From the IMG/VR virus record IMGVR_UViG_3300044796_000657, positions 366,230 to 430,229 of that record: a DNA stretch of 64,000 nt. The stretch is one strand, 5' to 3'. A program made the translations under genes and the position numbers. Numbering within the stretch: position 1 is the stretch's first letter; every line of letters begins with the position of its first letter. This document shows positions 17,191 through 51,313 of the stretch, piece by piece. The notes beneath the pieces are model-generated. The model was not told the DNA's origin, searched no databases, and was given only the letters and a program-made list of their open reading frames with translations.

Positions 17191-17258
17191 GGGTCTACTT
17201 GCGGGCAAGCTCTGGGTTTTGCAAATCCGGCAACGGGGTTCAACTCCCCGTAGATCCA
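17191..17258 (+). tRNA. atypical tRNA-Ala(UGC)-like, compact D-arm
   Basis: Acceptor gggtcta/tagatcc with G3:U70 and A73; loop tt-tgc-aa; T-arm cgggg-ttcaact-ccccg. Confidence 0.6.
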
Positions 17259-24653: not shown

Positions 24654-24733
24654 GAATATAGGTCGTTTTAAGTCAGTTAAGACTCCGTCAATCGTCTGTT
24701 GCCGGAATAGAGGTTCAAATCCTCTCCTATTCA
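24654..24733 (+). ncRNA. tRNA-like RNA with extended anticodon arm
   Basis: T-arm agagg-ttcaaat-cctct; bulged acceptor gaata(ta)gg/cctattc; 13-nt anticodon region. Confidence 0.45.
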
Positions 24734-26579: not shown

Positions 26580-27305
26580 CTATGGTGTTACTTTGGCTCT
26601 AAGAACCTTTGCGGTTTGCGTCCTACGGGTCGCCTTCATATCGGTCACTACTTCTCGGTAATCTTGCCGGGTCGTGATGGGGCTGAAGTCCTCATAGCCA
26701 ATTATCACGCTCCGCAAGAAACCAACTTGGAGGAGCTTGTTAAAGTTCTCAACAAATTCGGTGTAAACCAAATCAGAATGCAGCGTGATGTATTCAATGC
26801 CGAACTTTACTTCCGCCTTCTCTCAATTGCCGGTTTTGGCGATTTAGCCAGAATGCCGCAATTCAAATCGGCTGATGAAGACAAACAAACTGGTCAACTA
26901 CTCACCTATCCAGTCTTGATGACACACGATGTCGTCGGCTATGAGAACGTGTTGGTAGGTGAAGATCAGAAGGTGCATTTGGAATACGCTCGTAGGCTAA
27001 TTCGCAAATACAACAAAACCTTTAATGAAGAAGTTGTTTTGCCTCGTCCGATGATTGTTGGCGGGAAAGTTAAGGACTTGCGGAAGCCGACTGAAAAGAT
27101 GAGCAAGTCGTCACCTGATGGTTGTTTGTTCCTTGACGATACGCCCGACGATATTCGTACAAAATTGAAGGCAGCAACCACGACACCGGAAGGGATAGAG
27201 AACCTTTCTACATTGTACACTCATTTTGTTGGGCCTACAGTGCCTTCTATGAATTCTGAGCTTAAGTCTCAGTTGGCAGATGCTTTGATTGAGGCTTTTA
27301 AATAA
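26576..27305 (+). CDS. trpS: tryptophanyl-tRNA synthetase, shortened; probable +1 frameshift at 26591-26597
   Basis: GLRPTGRLHIGHY (HIGH), LTYPVLMTHDV, VGEDQKVHLE, KMSKS; no in-frame ATG before the Rossmann strand. Confidence 0.85.
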
Positions 27306-27584: not shown

Positions 27585-28310
27585 ATGGAAGCGTTGTATG
27601 ACAAAAATGGCTTAATGTTTTATTCGGAGCGGGAAGTCAAGTTGCGGGAACAGTTCCGTGATTACTTTGCGGATCGAATGAGGGAAACGTTGTTAGCGAC
27701 GAATCCTATGTGGCGGTTTTTGATGGTGGAAGCACCTCTGTTAACGCCCAACAAACACATCAACAAGAATTACACTGCCGAAGATGTATTCGTGTGTGAC
27801 GATCTAACCTTAAGGCCGGAAACGACGCCGGGTACTTATCAGTGGATTCGTTCCAAGTTTGATGACAGCAACAGTGGTTTTCGTCCCCCGATTTGCGTTT
27901 GGCAATACGGCAAGAGTTTTCGGCAAGAACAGGATCAAGTATCAAAGCATTGCCGGTTCAAAGAGTTTTACCAGCAGGAATTCCAGTGCGTCTTTACGTC
28001 GGATACTGCGAATGATTATCACACGGTTTTACAAAAACCGGTTGAAAAGATGATTCGTGATATGATTGGCTTGCCGACTCGGTTGGTGGTTAGTGATCGG
28101 TTGCCGGATTACAGCAAGAGTACAATGGATATCGAAGTAGACAACGGCGACAAGTGGATGGAAGTTTGTAGTATGAGCCTGCGAACCGATTTTCCCGGTA
28201 CGGTCAGTTTCACGACCAAAACGAAGGTTGTGGAAAGGGATCTGTTGGTTGCGGAGGTTGCCATCGGTTTAGATCGGTGTGTTTACAATTTCCTGCAAAG
28301 GGTAGATTAA
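27585..28310 (+). CDS. class II aaRS catalytic core, GlyRS (alpha2-type)-like, lacking anticodon-binding domain
   Basis: LRPETTPG, GKSFRQE..RFKEFYQQEFQ (motif 2), WMEVCS, EVAIGLDRCV (motif 3); ends soon after motif 3. Confidence 0.8.
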   Translation: MEALYDKNGLMFYSEREVKLREQFRDYFADRMRETLLATNPMWRFLMVEAPLLTPNKHINKNYTAEDVFVCDDLTLRPETTPGTYQWIRSKFDDSNSGFRPPICVWQYGKSFRQEQDQVSKHCRFKEFYQQEFQCVFTSDTANDYHTVLQKPVEKMIRDMIGLPTRLVVSDRLPDYSKSTMDIEVDNGDKWMEVCSMSLRTDFPGTVSFTTKTKVVERDLLVAEVAIGLDRCVYNFLQRVD

Positions 28311-30454: not shown

Positions 30455-30889
30455 ATGCGATATACTAAAAAGTTCAGCAGTGTTGCTGCCGAAGAAGTAA
30501 AGGCCAGAGAGAGCATAAGAAAAATGTTTCATAAGGACATCAAATCAGATAAGATATTCAAAAGAATAATCAAAAAACAAGCTACTGCAATTTCGGAAGC
30601 AGAGCATGCACTTAGACTTGCTAGACTTTCAAGAGCTGGACTCAGTGCCCAAGCTAGTCGGATATTACAAGTTAATAATTTGTTGCCTGTATCAATGGTG
30701 GTGTTGAATAACGCTGTCATTGGAAAGACGGTTGCCAATGCCGAATCGGAGTTGAAAAAAATGGGTTATGAAATGCGAGTCGTCATGGATGATGGGGAAA
30801 GATTGGTTGTGACGGAAGACTTGCATAATCGCCGGGCGAATGTTGAAAAGCTCAACAACACGATCATGAGAGTTATTGACGTACGTTAA
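30455..30889 (+). CDS. hypothetical protein with possible I78/potato-inhibitor-like C-terminal domain
   Basis: GYEMRVVMDDGERLVVTEDLHNRRANV. Confidence 0.5.
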   Translation: MRYTKKFSSVAAEEVKARESIRKMFHKDIKSDKIFKRIIKKQATAISEAEHALRLARLSRAGLSAQASRILQVNNLLPVSMVVLNNAVIGKTVANAESELKKMGYEMRVVMDDGERLVVTEDLHNRRANVEKLNNTIMRVIDVR

Positions 30890-30996
30890 CTGGTTGTAGT
30901 TTATCGACGGTTAAAATTACAATTAGGGAAAACGTGACTAATCCAAGTTATGTTGCCCATATAATTGAGAAACGGGTTCAAATCCCGTCAGCCAGA
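30890..30996 (+). ncRNA. tRNA-like RNA with long extended anticodon arm
   Basis: ctggttg/cagccag acceptor, D-loop GG, T-arm acggg-ttcaaat-cccgt, long irregular middle stem. Confidence 0.65.
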
Positions 30997-31024: not shown

Positions 31025-31276
31025 ATGGAATCAATCAAACAAAAACACGTTGACCCTGTTTGGGGTGAATGTACTCTAATTTTCGCACCAGAAGCCGCCC
31101 AAGATATGGCTATGTACCAAATGATGTCCGACATGCCAAGATCGGGTGAAATTAGGGAACAAGAGGTAAAAGATTGGCGAACAATTAATAGTTTGATTTC
31201 AGAATTGTACTGGACAACAGATTTCAAATATGGTAGTATTGATGGGGAATTAGACCCCTTTGGATACTACGAATGA
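31025..31276 (+). CDS. hypothetical protein
   Basis: ORF coupled to nadD. Confidence 0.55.
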   Translation: MESIKQKHVDPVWGECTLIFAPEAAQDMAMYQMMSDMPRSGEIREQEVKDWRTINSLISELYWTTDFKYGSIDGELDPFGYYE

Positions 31277-31836
31277 AAATCAGTATTTTGGGTCTGTCAG
31301 CCAATCCAGTTACAAATGGGCACATAGGTGTTTCTGAACTTATTGTAGCTTCGGGTGCTGTTGATGAAGTATGGTTTTTGCCTTGCTATCATCACATGTA
31401 CGGCAAAGACTTGATTGATTCGTCGCATCGGCTCAAAATGTGCGAGTTGGCAGGAGTTAAGGTTTGTGATTGGGAAGTCAAAAATGGAAAATCTGGTAAG
31501 ACCTACGAAACTGTCGTCGGTTTGAAGAAGGAATTTCCCGAACATGAATTCTCTTGGATTATTGGCTCTGACAACGCAGACACAATACACAAATGGTACA
31601 ACTACGAAGAATTGGTGAATACAATTCCGTTCCTAGTTGTCCAAAGAGCGGGTAGTCCACTAAAAGGCGGCTGGTACGATTATCCCCCGCACAAAGTCAT
31701 TCCCACGAAATGGGTAAATGAAATAAGCTCCACTTTGGTGAGAGCAATGGTCAAGAGTGGCGATCCCAAAGTTGTTGATCTTGTACCGGCGAGTGTCCTA
31801 GATTACATTCGCAAACACAATTTTTACAAAGGTTAA
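31273..31836 (+). CDS. nadD: nicotinate-nucleotide adenylyltransferase
   Basis: GLSANPVTNGH, RLKMCEL, WIIGSDN, EISSTLVR. Confidence 0.88.
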   Translation: MKISILGLSANPVTNGHIGVSELIVASGAVDEVWFLPCYHHMYGKDLIDSSHRLKMCELAGVKVCDWEVKNGKSGKTYETVVGLKKEFPEHEFSWIIGSDNADTIHKWYNYEELVNTIPFLVVQRAGSPLKGGWYDYPPHKVIPTKWVNEISSTLVRAMVKSGDPKVVDLVPASVLDYIRKHNFYKG

Positions 31837-33644: not shown

Positions 33645-33718
33645 GGGCCTATAGTTCAACCGGGGAGAACATCCAACAGGAATGTTGGAAGGTCGAGGTT
33701 CAAATCCTCATAAGCCCA
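33645..33718 (+). ncRNA. tRNA-like RNA with GGAA-capped 7-bp arm instead of a 7-nt anticodon loop
   Basis: gggccta/taagccc, D-arm gttc/gaac, tccaaca-ggaa-tgttgga, T-arm. Confidence 0.7.
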
Positions 33719-33722
33719 CTTT

Positions 33723-34837: not shown

Positions 34838-35165
34838 CGGCAGTGTTCAATTTCTTTATCAACTTTGAAAGTTAATGTGATTTATGGCTCGTCCTCCTGA
34901 ATTTGATAAACACGCAGAATTAATTACTGATTACATTCGTAAGATGGGACTTTACGGGGTAACGCAAGAAATTCGCTTTGCTTTAACTGCTATTTTTGTC
35001 AACGATATTAATGATGATGAATTGTTTCATAAAGTAATGAAAGCATTGGAATCTTTCCAAGACGAATTAGGTAAAATTCAAGAAGATCGTATGAGTAATA
35101 GGAAAAAAGATCAACCTATTTATCCAATTGGGACAGTTATCGGGACTTTAGCATAACGGCAGTGT
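34822..35165 (+). repeat. 25-bp direct repeat of a tRNA 5' end (34822-34846 and 35141-35165)
   Basis: cgggactttagcataacggcagtgt occurs twice. Confidence 0.9.
34884..35156 (+). CDS. hypothetical protein between the repeats
   Basis: Ends GTLA in the second repeat. Confidence 0.6.
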   Translation: MARPPEFDKHAELITDYIRKMGLYGVTQEIRFALTAIFVNDINDDELFHKVMKALESFQDELGKIQEDRMSNRKKDQPIYPIGTVIGTLA

Positions 35166-35223
35166 GTTCCGGTAAGACCTACGTGGTTCCGGAATGGTAA
35201 GAGTTCGACTCTCTTAAGTTCCA
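35142..35223 (+). ncRNA. tRNA-like RNA with enlarged anticodon region
   Basis: gggactt/aagttcc, D-arm, ttccgg-16 nt-ccggaa, T-arm aagag-ttcgact-ctctt. Confidence 0.7.
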
Positions 35224-35244
35224 CTAGAACGAATAGATACATCT

Positions 35245-36970: not shown

Positions 36971-37038
36971 CGCAATCGTACGGGGTACAGTTGGTTCTCA
37001 TAAGACTAATTTGCTGAGTTCGAGTCTCAGGTTTGCGA
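36971..37038 (+). tRNA. atypical tRNA(CAU), compact D-arm
   Basis: cgcaatc/gtttgcg; gtac-ggg-gtac mini arm; loop ct-cat-aa; T-arm ctgag-ttcgagt-ctcag. Confidence 0.6.
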
Positions 37039-47000: not shown

Positions 47001-49838
47001 ATGAATCTTGACCCTAACACTCGTGAACAAGAAGTTCTCAAATTGTGGAAGGGTCAAGATACGTTTCAGGCGATTCAATTTCGTCGGAAATCGGCTAAGC
47101 CTTTTGTGATGTTTGAAGGCCCGCCAACCGCCAATGGCAAACCCGGCATCCATCACGTTCTCACCCGCACATTTAAAGATGCAATCGCACGCTTCCAAAC
47201 CATGAAAGGCCGTTACGTTGAACGACGGGCCGGATGGGATGAACACGGATTGCCAGTAGAATTAGAAGTCCAAAAAGCCTACGGACTCCCCACCAAAGAA
47301 TCCATTCTCGATTACGGTGTTGCTGAATTTAATAACAACTGCCAAGTCAGCACCCGCAACTTCATCGCCGATTGGGAAAAATTAACCCACCGAATGGGTT
47401 ATTGGCTCGATTTTGAAAACGCCTATAACACATCAGATCCTAGTTATATCAACAAAGTTTGGACAGTCTTAGATAATCTCATGGCTAATGATGAGATTTA
47501 TCAAGACTATAAAATCGTGCCTTGGGCTTGCGATTCCCAAACCGTCTTATCCAATTCAGAATTAGAACAAGGTTATAAAGAGGTTGAACACAATACGATG
47601 ACGGTTAAATTCCGCATCGATGATGACACCAATACCTATCTGATCGCATGGACAACTACCCCTTGGACATTGCCAGCTAATATGGCTTTAGCAGTCAATC
47701 CTTCGTTAACATATTACGAAACCATTGACTCAGAGGGGTGCCATTGCATTAGCCTCAAAAAAACCGAACCCTCATTACCAATCAGTGGCCACAAACTTGT
47801 CGGCCTAAAATATCGTCACCCATTTATCTCTGGTAAGGTCTGTCAAGTCTATGGCGACAACTTCGTTAGAGGCGATACAGGAACCGGAATTGTACATATC
47901 GCACCTGCTTTTGGCATTGATGATTACGCTCTTTGGAAAAAGAGTATGGCCCTTGAGCCAATCATCTGTCACGTAAATCCGGATGGTTCTTTCAACGCAG
48001 CAGCTCCAGACTTGCTGCGAGGCATCAATTTGTTGGACAGAAATTTCAAAACTGTTAACTCTTTAATTCATGCCCACTTGACTTCGGCAGGAGCAAACTA
48101 CGAAAATCAATCCTTCAAGGATTCGGGATTTACACATCAATACCCGCACAATTGGCGAACGGGTAAGCCTCTTATCTATATGTTTAGACATAGTTGGTTC
48201 GTGAAAACAACCGGCCTCAAACTTCGTCAAGTTAACAAAGAAGAAGTGACTTGGTATCCTAGTAATATCAAAGAAGGTAGATTTGGACAATGGCTTGATG
48301 GTGGCAAAGATTGGGCAATTTCCCGTGAACGATTTTGGGGTACACCGTTGCCCTTTTATCGTGATGCTGACAATAACGTCTCTTTCCAAGTCCCTCAATA
48401 TTATCACAAGCCGGGTTCTGATACGCCCATCGTCAAAGATAGAGTAATCTGGAAACGAACCTCAGAAGTTTTGGACTGCTGGTTCGATAGTGGCGCAATG
48501 CCGTTTGCCGCTTATGAGAAGTTCCAGCCAGCCGATGTAATTTGTGAGGGCATCGATCAAACCCGTGGGTGGTTCTATTCGTTAATGGTTATTGGTGTTG
48601 CTCTCACAGAACATACGCCATTCAAGGCAGCGATTTGCCTCGGCCATGTTCTGGATAAGAACGGCGTGAAAATGAGCAAGTCCAAAAAGAATGCTGTTGA
48701 TCCTTGGGAAGTTTTTGAGCGAGAAGGCGCTGATGCCGTTCGTTGGTACATGCTCAAAACACCAATCGGACAATCTCTTTTGTGGAATGAAGCCGAAGTT
48801 AAAAAAGTCAATCAAACATTCTTCAATCGCTTGCTTAGCTCTCTTGACTTTTACGAGCAACAACAAAACCCCGACAAGCCTCATCGATCTAGTAATGGGT
48901 CAAAAGATGCTACGGATATTTGGATGATGGCACGCCTACACAGTGTTGTTAACAGCGTATCCCAATATTTGGAAGATTATGAATTTGCCAAAGCGATTGA
49001 AGCCATTGAGCTTTTTACCAACGATCTTTCTAATGTTTGGATTAGAACAAATCGATCACGATTCCTTGCTGATGGTGCCCATGTTCCTAACGGTATTTTG
49101 AAAAACTGCCTAAAAACACTAACATTGTTAATTGCACCGTTGGCGCCGATGTTGGCTGAACATGTCTGGTATCGTTTGTGTCCAGAAAACATTGTTTATG
49201 GAAGCATGGGTTCGGTACATGCTACCGATTGGCCTAAACCAGAAGATAATACGTGGGACGCATTCTCAAAAAATATTGTTATTCTTGAAGCCATGAAAGA
49301 AGCTCGTCAAGTTATCACTGAAGGCTTGAAACAGAGAGACAAGCGGAATATCCGTTTGAGGCAACCGATCAAAGCAGTGCGGGTGCCTCGTAACATCAAT
49401 CCACAACTCATTCAATTCGTCAAGACGGAGTTGAATGTTAAAGACATCATCGTTGATGCTAAGGGGGAATCCGTGGAAATGGATTTCAACCTTACGGATG
49501 AACTTGTAGCGGAAGGTATGGCAAGAGATTTGATGCGGGCTATTCAAGTTCGCCGCAAAGATTTAGGTTTGAAGCGTGGTGAACCAATTCGTATCGTATT
49601 GGAAGTCGATAAAAAGACCAGATCCATGCTTGAACCACATATGAGTGAGTTGATGTTAAGTGTGACTTGTGGTGATCTGCGATACAAAGAAGTCGCAGAT
49701 ACAGCATCGCCGATTGTAATGGAAGTCACAAAAATGGAACCGGCTAACCCAGATGGCTATAAGGAATTCGGAAAAGCCACAACAAAACTGACTTCTGCTG
49801 AAATCGCCAAAGTGATATTGACAAATCGTGTCGGTTAA
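47001..49838 (+). CDS. ileS: isoleucyl-tRNA synthetase (type 2-like)
   Basis: FEGPPTANGKPGIHH, GWDEHGLP, WTTTPWTL, GTGIVH, DWAISRERFWG, EGIDQTRGWF, KMSKS. Confidence 0.93.
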   Translation: MNLDPNTREQEVLKLWKGQDTFQAIQFRRKSAKPFVMFEGPPTANGKPGIHHVLTRTFKDAIARFQTMKGRYVERRAGWDEHGLPVELEVQKAYGLPTKESILDYGVAEFNNNCQVSTRNFIADWEKLTHRMGYWLDFENAYNTSDPSYINKVWTVLDNLMANDEIYQDYKIVPWACDSQTVLSNSELEQGYKEVEHNTMTVKFRIDDDTNTYLIAWTTTPWTLPANMALAVNPSLTYYETIDSEGCHCISLKKTEPSLPISGHKLVGLKYRHPFISGKVCQVYGDNFVRGDTGTGIVHIAPAFGIDDYALWKKSMALEPIICHVNPDGSFNAAAPDLLRGINLLDRNFKTVNSLIHAHLTSAGANYENQSFKDSGFTHQYPHNWRTGKPLIYMFRHSWFVKTTGLKLRQVNKEEVTWYPSNIKEGRFGQWLDGGKDWAISRERFWGTPLPFYRDADNNVSFQVPQYYHKPGSDTPIVKDRVIWKRTSEVLDCWFDSGAMPFAAYEKFQPADVICEGIDQTRGWFYSLMVIGVALTEHTPFKAAICLGHVLDKNGVKMSKSKKNAVDPWEVFEREGADAVRWYMLKTPIGQSLLWNEAEVKKVNQTFFNRLLSSLDFYEQQQNPDKPHRSSNGSKDATDIWMMARLHSVVNSVSQYLEDYEFAKAIEAIELFTNDLSNVWIRTNRSRFLADGAHVPNGILKNCLKTLTLLIAPLAPMLAEHVWYRLCPENIVYGSMGSVHATDWPKPEDNTWDAFSKNIVILEAMKEARQVITEGLKQRDKRNIRLRQPIKAVRVPRNINPQLIQFVKTELNVKDIIVDAKGESVEMDFNLTDELVAEGMARDLMRAIQVRRKDLGLKRGEPIRIVLEVDKKTRSMLEPHMSELMLSVTCGDLRYKEVADTASPIVMEVTKMEPANPDGYKEFGKATTKLTSAEIAKVILTNRVG

Positions 49839-49876: not shown

Positions 49877-51313
49877 ATGAAAAAGGCAGAATTAGTAGAA
49901 GCAGGCATTCCCGTGAATTGCCATGCTGCTGCCATTAAGGTCATTCAAGATGGCTTCCGGCACAAAATCTTCCCTTCCAACAAAGGGGCACGGGAAGCTT
50001 TAACGAGAGTGGCCGCTGCGCCTGAAATGCACCTCGGCGCAGACGACTTCTACCGAGAATTGGCAAGCACCATCATTGCCACCCGCAAACAGCACGTTGA
50101 AGACGAAGCTCTTTACGCCAAAAACAGCATTGGTACAAGCCAATCGTTTGCCTCTTGGGGTGCCGACATTGAACAAGGTGCCATTGATCAAATGCAAAAT
50201 GCGGTATCCCTGCCAGTTTCAGTGGTCGGCGCCATGATGCCCGATGCCCACAGTGGGTACGGTTTGCCCGTAGGCGGTGTTCTGGCCACATACGACAGCA
50301 TCGTTCCTTATGCGGTAGGCGTCGATATTGGTTGCCGGATGCGTTTTACGTTCACCGATATCGATCCATCACTCCTCAAGGATTCTCACGACAAGAAGGC
50401 GACTCCGCTCTGTAAAGCCTTGCGTGAAGGAACGGTTTTTGGCGTCGGCGGTCAACACGAAATTAAGATGAACCATCCAGTCATGGACAAGGATTGGAAC
50501 ATCACGGCTGTCACAAAAGCCGCCAAAGATAAGGCATGGCGGCAGTTGGGAACCAGCGGTTCCGGCAATCACTTCGCCGAATGGGGCATTGTGACGTTAA
50601 CTCAAAAAGAATTCGGTTTAGAGCCGGGGAAATACGTCGCTCTCATGACTCACAGCGGCTCCCGTGGTTCGGGTTCTGATGTTTGTAGTTACTATACCGA
50701 CGTTGCCGCTTCCAAGCTGCCAAAGGCTTATGAGAAATTCGGCAAAATGAAATTGGCGTGGTTGCCAATGGCTTCCGAAGCTGGCCAAGAGTATTGGGCA
50801 GCTATGAACCTTATGGGTGATTATGCCGCTGCCAATCACTACGTCATTCACGAATTGGTTCTCAAGAATATGGGAGCAACGGCCCTTAAAGTGATTGAGA
50901 ACCACCACAATTTCGCATGGAAAGAAGATTACAAGGGAACCGAAGTGTACGTTCACCGTAAAGGTGCTACACCTGCCGGAAAGGGCGTACTGGGTATTAT
51001 CCCCGGTAGTATGGCCACTTCCGCATTCGTCGTACGAGGCAAGGGCAATCCTGAAAGCTTGATGTCGGCTTCTCACGGTGCCGGGCGGGCAATGAGCCGC
51101 ACCAAAGCTAAGGAACAGTTTAACTGGAGCACATGGAAGAGCCAAATCCAAAATGCCGGTGTACGACTATTGAGCGGCGGGATTGATGAGGTTCCCGGTG
51201 CTTACAAAGACATTCACAAAGTCATGGCTCAACAAACCGACTTGATTGATGTTGTGGCAGAATTCATGCCCAAAATCGTCCTCATGGGTCAAGATGGTCG
51301 GAGCGAAGATTAA
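49877..51313 (+). CDS. rtcB: RtcB RNA ligase
   Basis: PDAHSGYGLPVGG, GVDIGC, GSGNHF, HSGSRG, HHNFA, HRKGAT, PGSM, SASHGAGR, DEVPGAYK. Confidence 0.95.
   Translation: MKKAELVEAGIPVNCHAAAIKVIQDGFRHKIFPSNKGAREALTRVAAAPEMHLGADDFYRELASTIIATRKQHVEDEALYAKNSIGTSQSFASWGADIEQGAIDQMQNAVSLPVSVVGAMMPDAHSGYGLPVGGVLATYDSIVPYAVGVDIGCRMRFTFTDIDPSLLKDSHDKKATPLCKALREGTVFGVGGQHEIKMNHPVMDKDWNITAVTKAAKDKAWRQLGTSGSGNHFAEWGIVTLTQKEFGLEPGKYVALMTHSGSRGSGSDVCSYYTDVAASKLPKAYEKFGKMKLAWLPMASEAGQEYWAAMNLMGDYAAANHYVIHELVLKNMGATALKVIENHHNFAWKEDYKGTEVYVHRKGATPAGKGVLGIIPGSMATSAFVVRGKGNPESLMSASHGAGRAMSRTKAKEQFNWSTWKSQIQNAGVRLLSGGIDEVPGAYKDIHKVMAQQTDLIDVVAEFMPKIVLMGQDGRSED

Follow-up and report, generated by a model that had tools for sequence, protein, structure and literature searches.

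A tRNA-like gene of a phage tRNA array whose anticodon arm is replaced by a long irregular hairpin

The tRNA cluster of bacteriophage T4 encodes a stable, Northern-verified RNA, rnaC, which has remained unexplained in its role after decades (PMC3014915, PMC9697503); for this RNA, also termed species 1 RNA, no role has been known since the 1970s. The tRNA genes of Lak megaphages carry 'enigmatic introns', described there as possibly common in large phages (Devoto et al. 2019, PMC6784885), and some jumbo phages encode Y RNAs alongside a Ro-like (TROVE) protein (PMC7824862). Two of these old puzzles, i.e. the tRNA-like stable RNAs encoded in phage tRNA clusters and the 'enigmatic introns' in tRNA genes of megaphages, meet in the 107-nt element analysed here.

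The window, i.e. the whole 64-kb stretch of DNA under analysis, forms the end of an IMG/VR virus record of 430,229 bp. Its DNA is present in four assemblies from separate samples, its own record and three others, one of these being the 614,480-bp JGI contig Ga0480561_0000004 in which it is embedded; all four are 100% identical, leaving no variation to analyse, and the runs containing window DNA are peat metagenomes. The 430-kb 'provirus' record is itself a cut of the 614,480-bp contig at an offset of 239 nt, with the window at the cut edge, and this trimming may be a boundary-calling artefact on a phage of more than 600 kb or may mark a real host flank. Gene content suggests a prokaryotic virus, probably of bacterial host type, based on its PHROG DNA polymerase and helicases, peptide deformylase and a NadD with bacterial named relatives; beside NadD and peptide deformylase the phage encodes NAD synthetase and glutamate dehydrogenase. 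ARAGORN reports 33 tRNA genes in the window, 32 of them on the + strand and interleaved with small ORFs, and 37 in the whole 430-kb record. Inside the array we also observed a translation/RNA-repair set consisting of a truncated TrpRS-like protein of 229 aa (26616-27305 (+)), a Gly/His-like class II aminoacyl-tRNA synthetase (aaRS) core of 241 aa (27585-28310 (+)), an isoleucyl-tRNA synthetase (IleRS) and the RNA ligase RtcB. The element, its parts and the genes relevant to its interpretation are, in window coordinates:

30455..30889 (+), upstream ORF of 144 aa, its stop codon abutting nucleotide 1 of the element
30890..30996 (+), tRNA-like gene of 107 nt, with an RF00005 match, an ARAGORN -i call and a whole-element fold z of -3.2
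30890..30896 (+), 5' strand of the acceptor stem, CTGGTTG, pairing with 30989-30995 (7 bp including one G.U)
30899..30917 (+), D arm with the stem GTTT/AAAT and an 11-nt loop containing the equivalents of A14, G18, G19 and A21
30920..30967 (+), middle arm of 48 nt in place of the anticodon arm
30925..30955 (+), 31-nt insert at tRNA positions 31/32 as placed by ARAGORN -i, preceded by U and with G as last base
30956..30962 (+), anticodon-loop remnant CCCATAT, with CAT at 30958-30960
30972..30988 (+), T arm ACGGG/TTCAAAT/CCCGT
30989..30996 (+), 3' strand of the acceptor stem and discriminator A73 (30996), without an encoded CCA and followed by a T-run
31025..31836 (+), downstream ORFs, i.e. an ORF of 83 aa (31025-31276) and NadD (31273-31836; PF01467, NadD homologues)
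47001..49838 (+), IleRS; TIGR00392 with 697.8 bits against a cut-off of 621.4
49877..51313 (+), RtcB RNA ligase; phrog_1075 8.8e-101, NCBIfam RtcB models, PDB RtcB 5.5e-35

The original prediction of a tRNA-like RNA with a long irregular hairpin replacing the anticodon arm is borne out by Rfam, by the intron mode of ARAGORN and by RNAfold, and all pairings it had proposed for the acceptor stem, the T arm and the middle arm are found in the sequence at the positions given. Its description of the remaining arms as normal holds for the acceptor and the T arm but not quite for the D arm, which is followed by 2 nt instead of 1 before the middle arm starts. Read from the sequence, the acceptor, D and T stems are free of mispairs, the D stem consisting of 4 bp (three Watson-Crick pairs and G10.U25) and its loop including GG, the T loop fits TTCRANY, and the conserved tertiary nucleotides U8, A14, G18, G19, A21, G53, T54, psi55, C56, A58 and C61 are all present. 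The middle arm is built, in this order, from a 6-bp helix (CAATTA/TAATTG), an ATA bulge on the 3' strand, a GGG/CCC helix, an internal loop of AA versus G (2x1), a 9-bp helix including two G.U pairs and a 6-nt terminal loop, AATCCA, and the minimum-energy structure of RNAfold reproduces the middle arm as originally drawn exactly.

A local scan with Rfam RF00005 scores the element at 32.4 bits against a gathering score of 29 (E 5.6e-5, model positions 1-71), with 50 nt of the element placed at the 18-nt anticodon-arm site of the model. Whole-window Rfam scans lost the element to their speed filters, it being absent from their output, and standard ARAGORN, with introns disallowed, does not call it; the intron mode of ARAGORN returns a complete cloverleaf, read as tRNA-Met(CAT), in which CAATT is followed by an insert of 31 nt and CCCATAT forms the loop. 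As transcribed, the element lacks the 5-bp stem, 7-nt loop, U33 and exposed anticodon of a canonical tRNA, with CAU located in helix and bulge. The middle arm alone folds on the + strand with -14.9 kcal/mol (z -4.44, 0 of 200 shuffles as good), whereas its reverse complement yields -6.4 kcal/mol (z -0.66), so that the helix, owing to its two G.U pairs, belongs to the sense RNA and is not a DNA palindrome. The element occupies a 135-nt gap, starting immediately after the stop of ORF 30455-30889 and ending 28 nt ahead of ORF 31025-31276, and in packing and strand it matches the 32 other + strand tRNAs of the array, being as tightly placed as the neighbouring tRNA-His. The upstream ORF is, judged by the relatives of its C-terminal domain, a real gene. 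Both the placement and the folding of the element exceed chance expectation.

The remnant CCCATAT aligns with CTNATAA loops, i.e. those of the phage's own Ile and Met tRNAs (CTGATAA and CTCATAA) and that of a Streptomyces-phage tRNA-Ile(TAT). In the latter case CCCATAT-AATTG-AGAAA aligns column-wise with CTTATAA-ACTGG-AGAAAG, and the alignment with Ile/Met-type tRNAs spans the anticodon loop, the 3' stem strand, the variable loop and the T arm; the 3' half of the element is 85% identical to the Streptomyces-phage tRNA, but at an E-value of 0.6, making this identity a hint only. Judged by its aligned loop remnant, the element is a CAU-family (Ile2/Met-type) tRNA gene interrupted between nucleotides 31 and 32. 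Within the arm, CCC of the remnant pairs with GGG of the insert, ATA forms the bulge, and the partner of T38 is the base with which the insert begins. C33 and T38 (U38) are departures from the CTCATAA loop common to the phage's three other CAT tRNAs, and since each of them adds pairs with the insert, the helix and the loop look mutually adapted, which suggests co-adaptation of the insert helix and the old loop. We rejected the insert as a repeat or mobile hairpin, because it is single copy in the 430-kb record. An origin by partial copying of the T arm was rejected as well, local alignment giving p = 0.24 and the similarity of the insert to the rest of the gene not being significant. Complementarity of the arm to the rest of the genome does not rise above chance level, and no function could be read from the arm.

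Homologues of the element were found neither by blastn against INPHARED phages nor by exact and gapped patterns in IMG/VR and JGI metagenomes. A covariance model detected ordinary tRNAs only, at 34 bits or less, both in 80 NadD-linked loci, which together with the window and two further loci amount to 886 kb, and in 25 whole huge-phage records. Close kin of the phage itself were not found via the 144-aa ORF, IleRS or the DNA polymerase, the search with the Fe-S protein led to one locus, which is without tRNAs, and the nearest NadD relative with NadD-IscA synteny has 52% identity and no such element upstream of NadD. By these searches the phage is an orphan lineage, which can explain why the element appears without homologues.

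The array contains further aberrant tRNA genes. A second non-decoding tRNA-like gene lies at 24656-24733 (+), 4 nt after tRNA-Gly, and scores 26.8 bits against the model of the element; its T arm is normal, its D stem has 7 bp and the place of the anticodon arm is taken by two 4-bp helices that are separated by a 1x1 loop and capped by a 5-nt loop. The 68-nt tRNA-like gene at 17191-17258 (+), missed by ARAGORN and seen by Rfam just as a 25-bit mascRNA match, shows G3.U70, A73, the loop TTTGCAA (anticodon TGC) and a miniature D hairpin, and is probably the otherwise missing tRNA-Ala of the phage. The tRNA at 33645-33719 (+) has an 8-nt anticodon loop, CAGGAATG, to which ARAGORN assigns an anticodon of four bases. 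At 36971-37038 (+) lies a CAT tRNA of 68 nt, unreported by Rfam, the D arm of which is a stub. Intron-mode candidates of ARAGORN are a Leu(AAG) with an 11-nt insert at 35142-35224 (+) and an Arg(GCG) with a 54-nt insert at 167306-167455 (-) of the 430-kb record.

Inserts are also found in tRNA genes of other huge phages. Among the other loci that we fetched, insert-bearing tRNA genes above the Rfam threshold are L030:4610-4728, L030:4746-4879 and L051:10390-10504. The genes at L030:4610-4731 and L051:10390-10505 (and likewise L031, L052, L118 and L130) share an insert of ~44 nt in different phages and tRNAs, composed of an A-rich lead, a 6-bp hairpin and the exact 12-mer TTCAGCAACCAA; it is positioned in the anticodon loop in one case, whereas in the other, a tRNA-Asp(GTC), it lies within or ahead of the 5' strand of the anticodon stem, and it looks like a mobile mini-insert family. 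EndA was not found in either of the two other insert-bearing phage records and RtcB in only one of the two; co-occurrence of RtcB with insert-bearing tRNAs, thus seen in 2 of 3 records, is uninformative and was dropped. The oversized candidate L030:4746-4879 reaches 34.6 bits against the Rfam tRNA model, and ARAGORN and RNAfold indicate further oversized candidates in huge-phage arrays at L027:285-393, L054:3532-3665 and L068:9062-9243, as well as one at L038:9993-10264 (-) with a 197-nt insert that is probably a group I intron.

Whether the insert could be removed from the transcript depends on signals and enzymes. The intron reading, originally put forward as speculative, stays speculative: ARAGORN reproduces the removal of 31 nt and the CAT anticodon, and the loop aligns with real Ile/Met loops; on the other side, neither a known splicing signal nor a known endonuclease was found and the RNA contig is unspliced. 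The accompanying statement that the bulge geometry is not a canonical bulge-helix-bulge (BHB) proved correct: instead of bulge(3)-helix(4)-bulge(3) with the splice sites in the bulges, the arm offers a bulge of 3 nt separated by just 3 bp from an internal loop of the 2x1 type, and of the two ARAGORN splice sites one falls inside a helix and the other at a helix end. BHB re-drawings by hand were rejected, as cuts at the bulges leave a 9-nt nonsense loop, and a K-turn was rejected by hand check, tandem G.A pairs being absent. A group I intron was rejected because 31 nt compare to a catalytic core of ~200 nt or more and Intron_gpI is unmatched; ribozymes, riboswitches and Y RNA were rejected since a local Rfam scan gave no match up to E 10, and tmRNA in view of G3:C70 instead of G3:U70 and a negative ARAGORN -m result. 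The U at -1 and the G at the end of the insert (CAATT/A...G/CCC, slashes marking the insert boundaries) fit the group I convention, with a chance of 1 in 16 per site.

EndA (TIGR00324) gave zero matches in the 430-kb record, the control being positive in four archaea, and neither RNase III nor TilS was found in the phage record, in which RtcB is the sole splicing/repair enzyme detected. A ligase suited to a protein-spliced intron is encoded: the RtcB-type enzyme at 49877-51313 of the window lies ~19 kb downstream of the element and adjoins the full-length IleRS, so that the sealing half of a cut-and-join pathway exists. Two ORFs after RtcB were considered as archease or endonuclease, but a link did not emerge, the one of 136 aa having no PDB or family match and the one of 254 aa having relatives that adjoin a COOH-NH2 ligase, not RtcB. 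At the RNA level, a metatranscriptomic run contains 77% of the sampled words of the region, and a 1065-nt metatranscriptome contig (30571-31635) crosses the element unspliced and gapless, with zero joints reported among the assembled contigs; the gene is 100% identical in this contig, which carries a SNP 216 nt downstream. Assembled RNA contigs drop rare forms, leave mature ends and abundance invisible and may stem from precursors or from contaminating DNA; the contig establishes no more than the presence of the unspliced form in an RNA library. An argument against splicing from the weak anticodon stem and C33 was dropped, because both features occur in other tRNAs of the phage (C33 in 3/37, anticodon stems with one GC pair in 6/37). 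The codons concerned are already covered by three other CAT tRNAs and a tRNA-Ile(TAT) of the phage.

We tentatively rank first a model according to which the element is an unspliced, non-decoding tRNA-like RNA, i.e. a tRNA mimic. The 31-nt insert at 31/32 would pair with the old anticodon loop, resulting in a continuous irregular 18-bp arm that buries CAU, and the tRNA 'top half' and elbow, comprising acceptor stem, T arm and D loop, are intact. From this intact top half it is predicted that the transcript would be released by RNase P and 3' processing and obtain its CCA as do the neighbouring tRNAs. As none of the known excision signals is present, the RNA most likely would stay unspliced and accumulate as a stable non-decoding tRNA mimic; its counterpart in T4 would be rnaC (species 1 RNA) with its tRNA-like 3' domain. 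The likeliest role would be that of a look-alike bound by enzymes recognising the tRNA body and unusable by the ribosome, possibly serving as a decoy or as a module for processing or punctuation. We infer these steps, from the intact top half via a processed and stable RNA to a mimic or decoy. The model is placed first based on a tRNA body above the Rfam gathering score, on the lack of any known excision signal and of EndA and RNase III in the record, on the middle arm, which looks selected as an RNA helix and co-adapted with C33 and U38, on the unspliced RNA-run contig, on the T4 precedent and on the presence of a second non-decoding gene in the array. Against it speak the encoded RtcB, a spliced product that would be acceptable among the phage's own tRNAs, the failure to find homologues, an RNA record consisting of assembled contigs, an arm from which no function can be read and a resemblance to rnaC that is architectural.

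A true short tRNA intron is a possible but doubtful explanation. In this case the 31 nt would be excised by a phage or host endonuclease leaving a 2',3'-cyclic phosphate and a 5'-OH, and the exons would be sealed by the phage RtcB at the junction ...ACAATT/CCCATATAATTG..., resulting in a 76-nt tRNA(CAU) with the loop CCCAUAU and C33 that would read AUG, or AUA after host lysidine modification. The cloverleaf being complete in ARAGORN once exactly 31 nt are removed, the remnant aligning with real Ile/Met loops, the pairing of insert and anticodon loop, as in pre-tRNAs, and the RtcB encoded beside IleRS are consistent with excision, and by the standards of the phage's other tRNAs, with their C33 and weak anticodon stems, the product would be acceptable. 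Precedents point in the same direction, i.e. megaphage tRNAs with 'enigmatic introns' (PMC6784885), insert-bearing tRNA genes above the Rfam tRNA threshold in other huge-phage arrays and the ~44-nt module common to two such genes at different tRNA positions. Excision is disfavoured by the absent BHB and the non-equivalent contexts of the cut sites, by the nonsense loop that BHB-type cuts would produce, by an insert size far below that of group I/II introns with ribozyme families unmatched, by EndA being found neither in the record nor in the two other insert-bearing phages, one of which is without RtcB, by the redundant codon coverage and, as weak evidence, by a spliced joint not seen in the RNA-run contigs. 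It is still somewhat less probable that the element exemplifies a new bacterial-virus tRNA intron of 31 nt at 31/32, neither BHB nor self-splicing and processed by an endonuclease and the phage RtcB, with the L030 and L051 genes as further examples; if true, tRNA(CAU) would be made only while the splicing pathway is active.

About equally likely as the RtcB-sealed intron is a tRNA pseudogene, according to which an Ile/Met-type gene was recently killed by the 31-nt insertion, e.g. of a hairpin-forming sequence or of a group I intron since deleted down to a remnant, and has not yet decayed or been lost, any transcript being roleless. Confinement of the element to one lineage, redundant codon coverage, the other aberrant tRNA-like genes in the array, the U before and the G at the end of the insert, as for group I introns in tRNA loops (chance 1 in 16), and the closest NadD-IscA relative (52% identity) lacking the element upstream of NadD all fit such a history. 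A dead gene is harder to reconcile with every stem and conserved tertiary nucleotide of the tRNA body being intact, with an arm far stabler than its shuffles on the sense strand only, with the changes to C33 and U38 strengthening the helix, with 100% identity of the gene across the other three assemblies, which stem from separate samples, and in the RNA-run contig despite its nearby SNP, and with the tight intergenic slot in a densely packed genome. The intact acceptor/T-arm half with A73 would also suit a dedicated acceptor RNA charged or modified by the truncated aaRS-like proteins encoded in the same array 2.6-4.3 kb upstream, i.e. the 229-aa TrpRS-like protein and the 241-aa class II core, the shortness of which suggests that the anticodon-binding domain is missing; this we regard as very unlikely, as the connection is one of proximity alone, a precedent was not found and the element has neither G3:U70 nor a long variable arm. 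Least probable is a chance tRNA-like match beside a chance hairpin, i.e. no RNA gene at all. The silence of the whole-window Rfam scans and of standard ARAGORN would agree with it, and it is contradicted by the local Rfam score above the gathering threshold (E 5.6e-5), by acceptor, D and T arms all at correct spacings, by the arm z of -4.4 and by an element on the strand of a 33-gene tRNA array that exactly fills an intergenic gap within it.

The element provides a clean test object, combining visible tRNA ancestry, nucleotide-precise insert boundaries, a synthesisable arm and a phage RtcB. Splicing of the element would make it the first case of a bacterial virus with a tRNA splicing pathway that depends on proteins; if it is unspliced, it would reveal an evolutionary route from phage tRNA genes to tRNA mimics that do not decode. 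For now it is a curiosity confined to one lineage.

The element was compared with several known systems. Bacterial Y RNAs are linked with RtcB operons, and the element resembles YrlA/bacterial Y RNA in being non-decoding and in combining tRNA-like acceptor, T and D modules with a long stem. The topology, however, is reversed: YrlA has its two ends at the base of the long stem and a loop on its 'acceptor', whereas the ends of the element form the acceptor stem. RF02553 is unmatched at the locus. With group I introns of tRNA anticodon loops the element shares the position of the insert at the loop edge, the U at -1 and the final G, and tRNA-Ile2(CAU), to the family of which the element would belong, is a classical host of such introns; unlike these, the 31-nt insert has no catalytic core and no Intron_gpI match, so that it cannot self-splice and would be at most a deletion remnant. 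Archaeal and eukaryal BHB introns, processed by EndA and RtcB, are likewise short inserts in the anticodon arm that pair with the loop, and the element agrees with them in an encoded RtcB-family ligase and in having, on the 3' strand, a bulge of 3 nt next to a short helix of G-C pairs. It differs from them in a central helix of 3 bp instead of 4, in a second 'bulge' that is a 2x1 internal loop, in EndA not being found in the record and in a bacterial-type gene content (peptide deformylase, NadD with bacterial named relatives).

With the Lak megaphage tRNAs the element shares several traits: it is likewise an oversized tRNA gene in the array of a phage of >400 kb, recovered only in intron mode, invariant within its lineage and with a mechanism that is not known. 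One Lak example, a tRNA-Tyr(GTA), has an insert of ~93 nt just 3' of the anticodon, compared to 31 nt at 31/32 in the element (PMC6784885), and unlike in this example the insert of the element forms one continuous helix with the loop; sequence similarity between the two is absent. The closest counterpart is the 3' domain of T4 rnaC, the 3' 93 nt of which (L088:2909-3001 (-)) comprise an acceptor stem, a long hairpin and a T arm and appear tRNA-like against a tRNA-derived covariance model. Both RNAs are located in a tRNA cluster on the strand of the tRNAs, have a 7-bp acceptor stem and a canonical T arm, carry a long hairpin (10 bp in rnaC) at the position of the anticodon arm, capped in both by a loop of 6 nt, and lack a decodable loop and an encoded CCA. 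Against the single-sequence model of the element, full-length rnaC scores 21.4 bits, second-best in the T4 tRNA region and on par with real T4 tRNAs; as this is the same range as that of unrelated T4 tRNAs, the resemblance is best described as architectural. T4 rnaC differs in an extra 46-nt 5' domain, in a degenerate D region and in failing the Rfam tRNA model, whereas the element passes this model and keeps a loop remnant, so that its tRNA ancestry, unlike that of rnaC, is visible.
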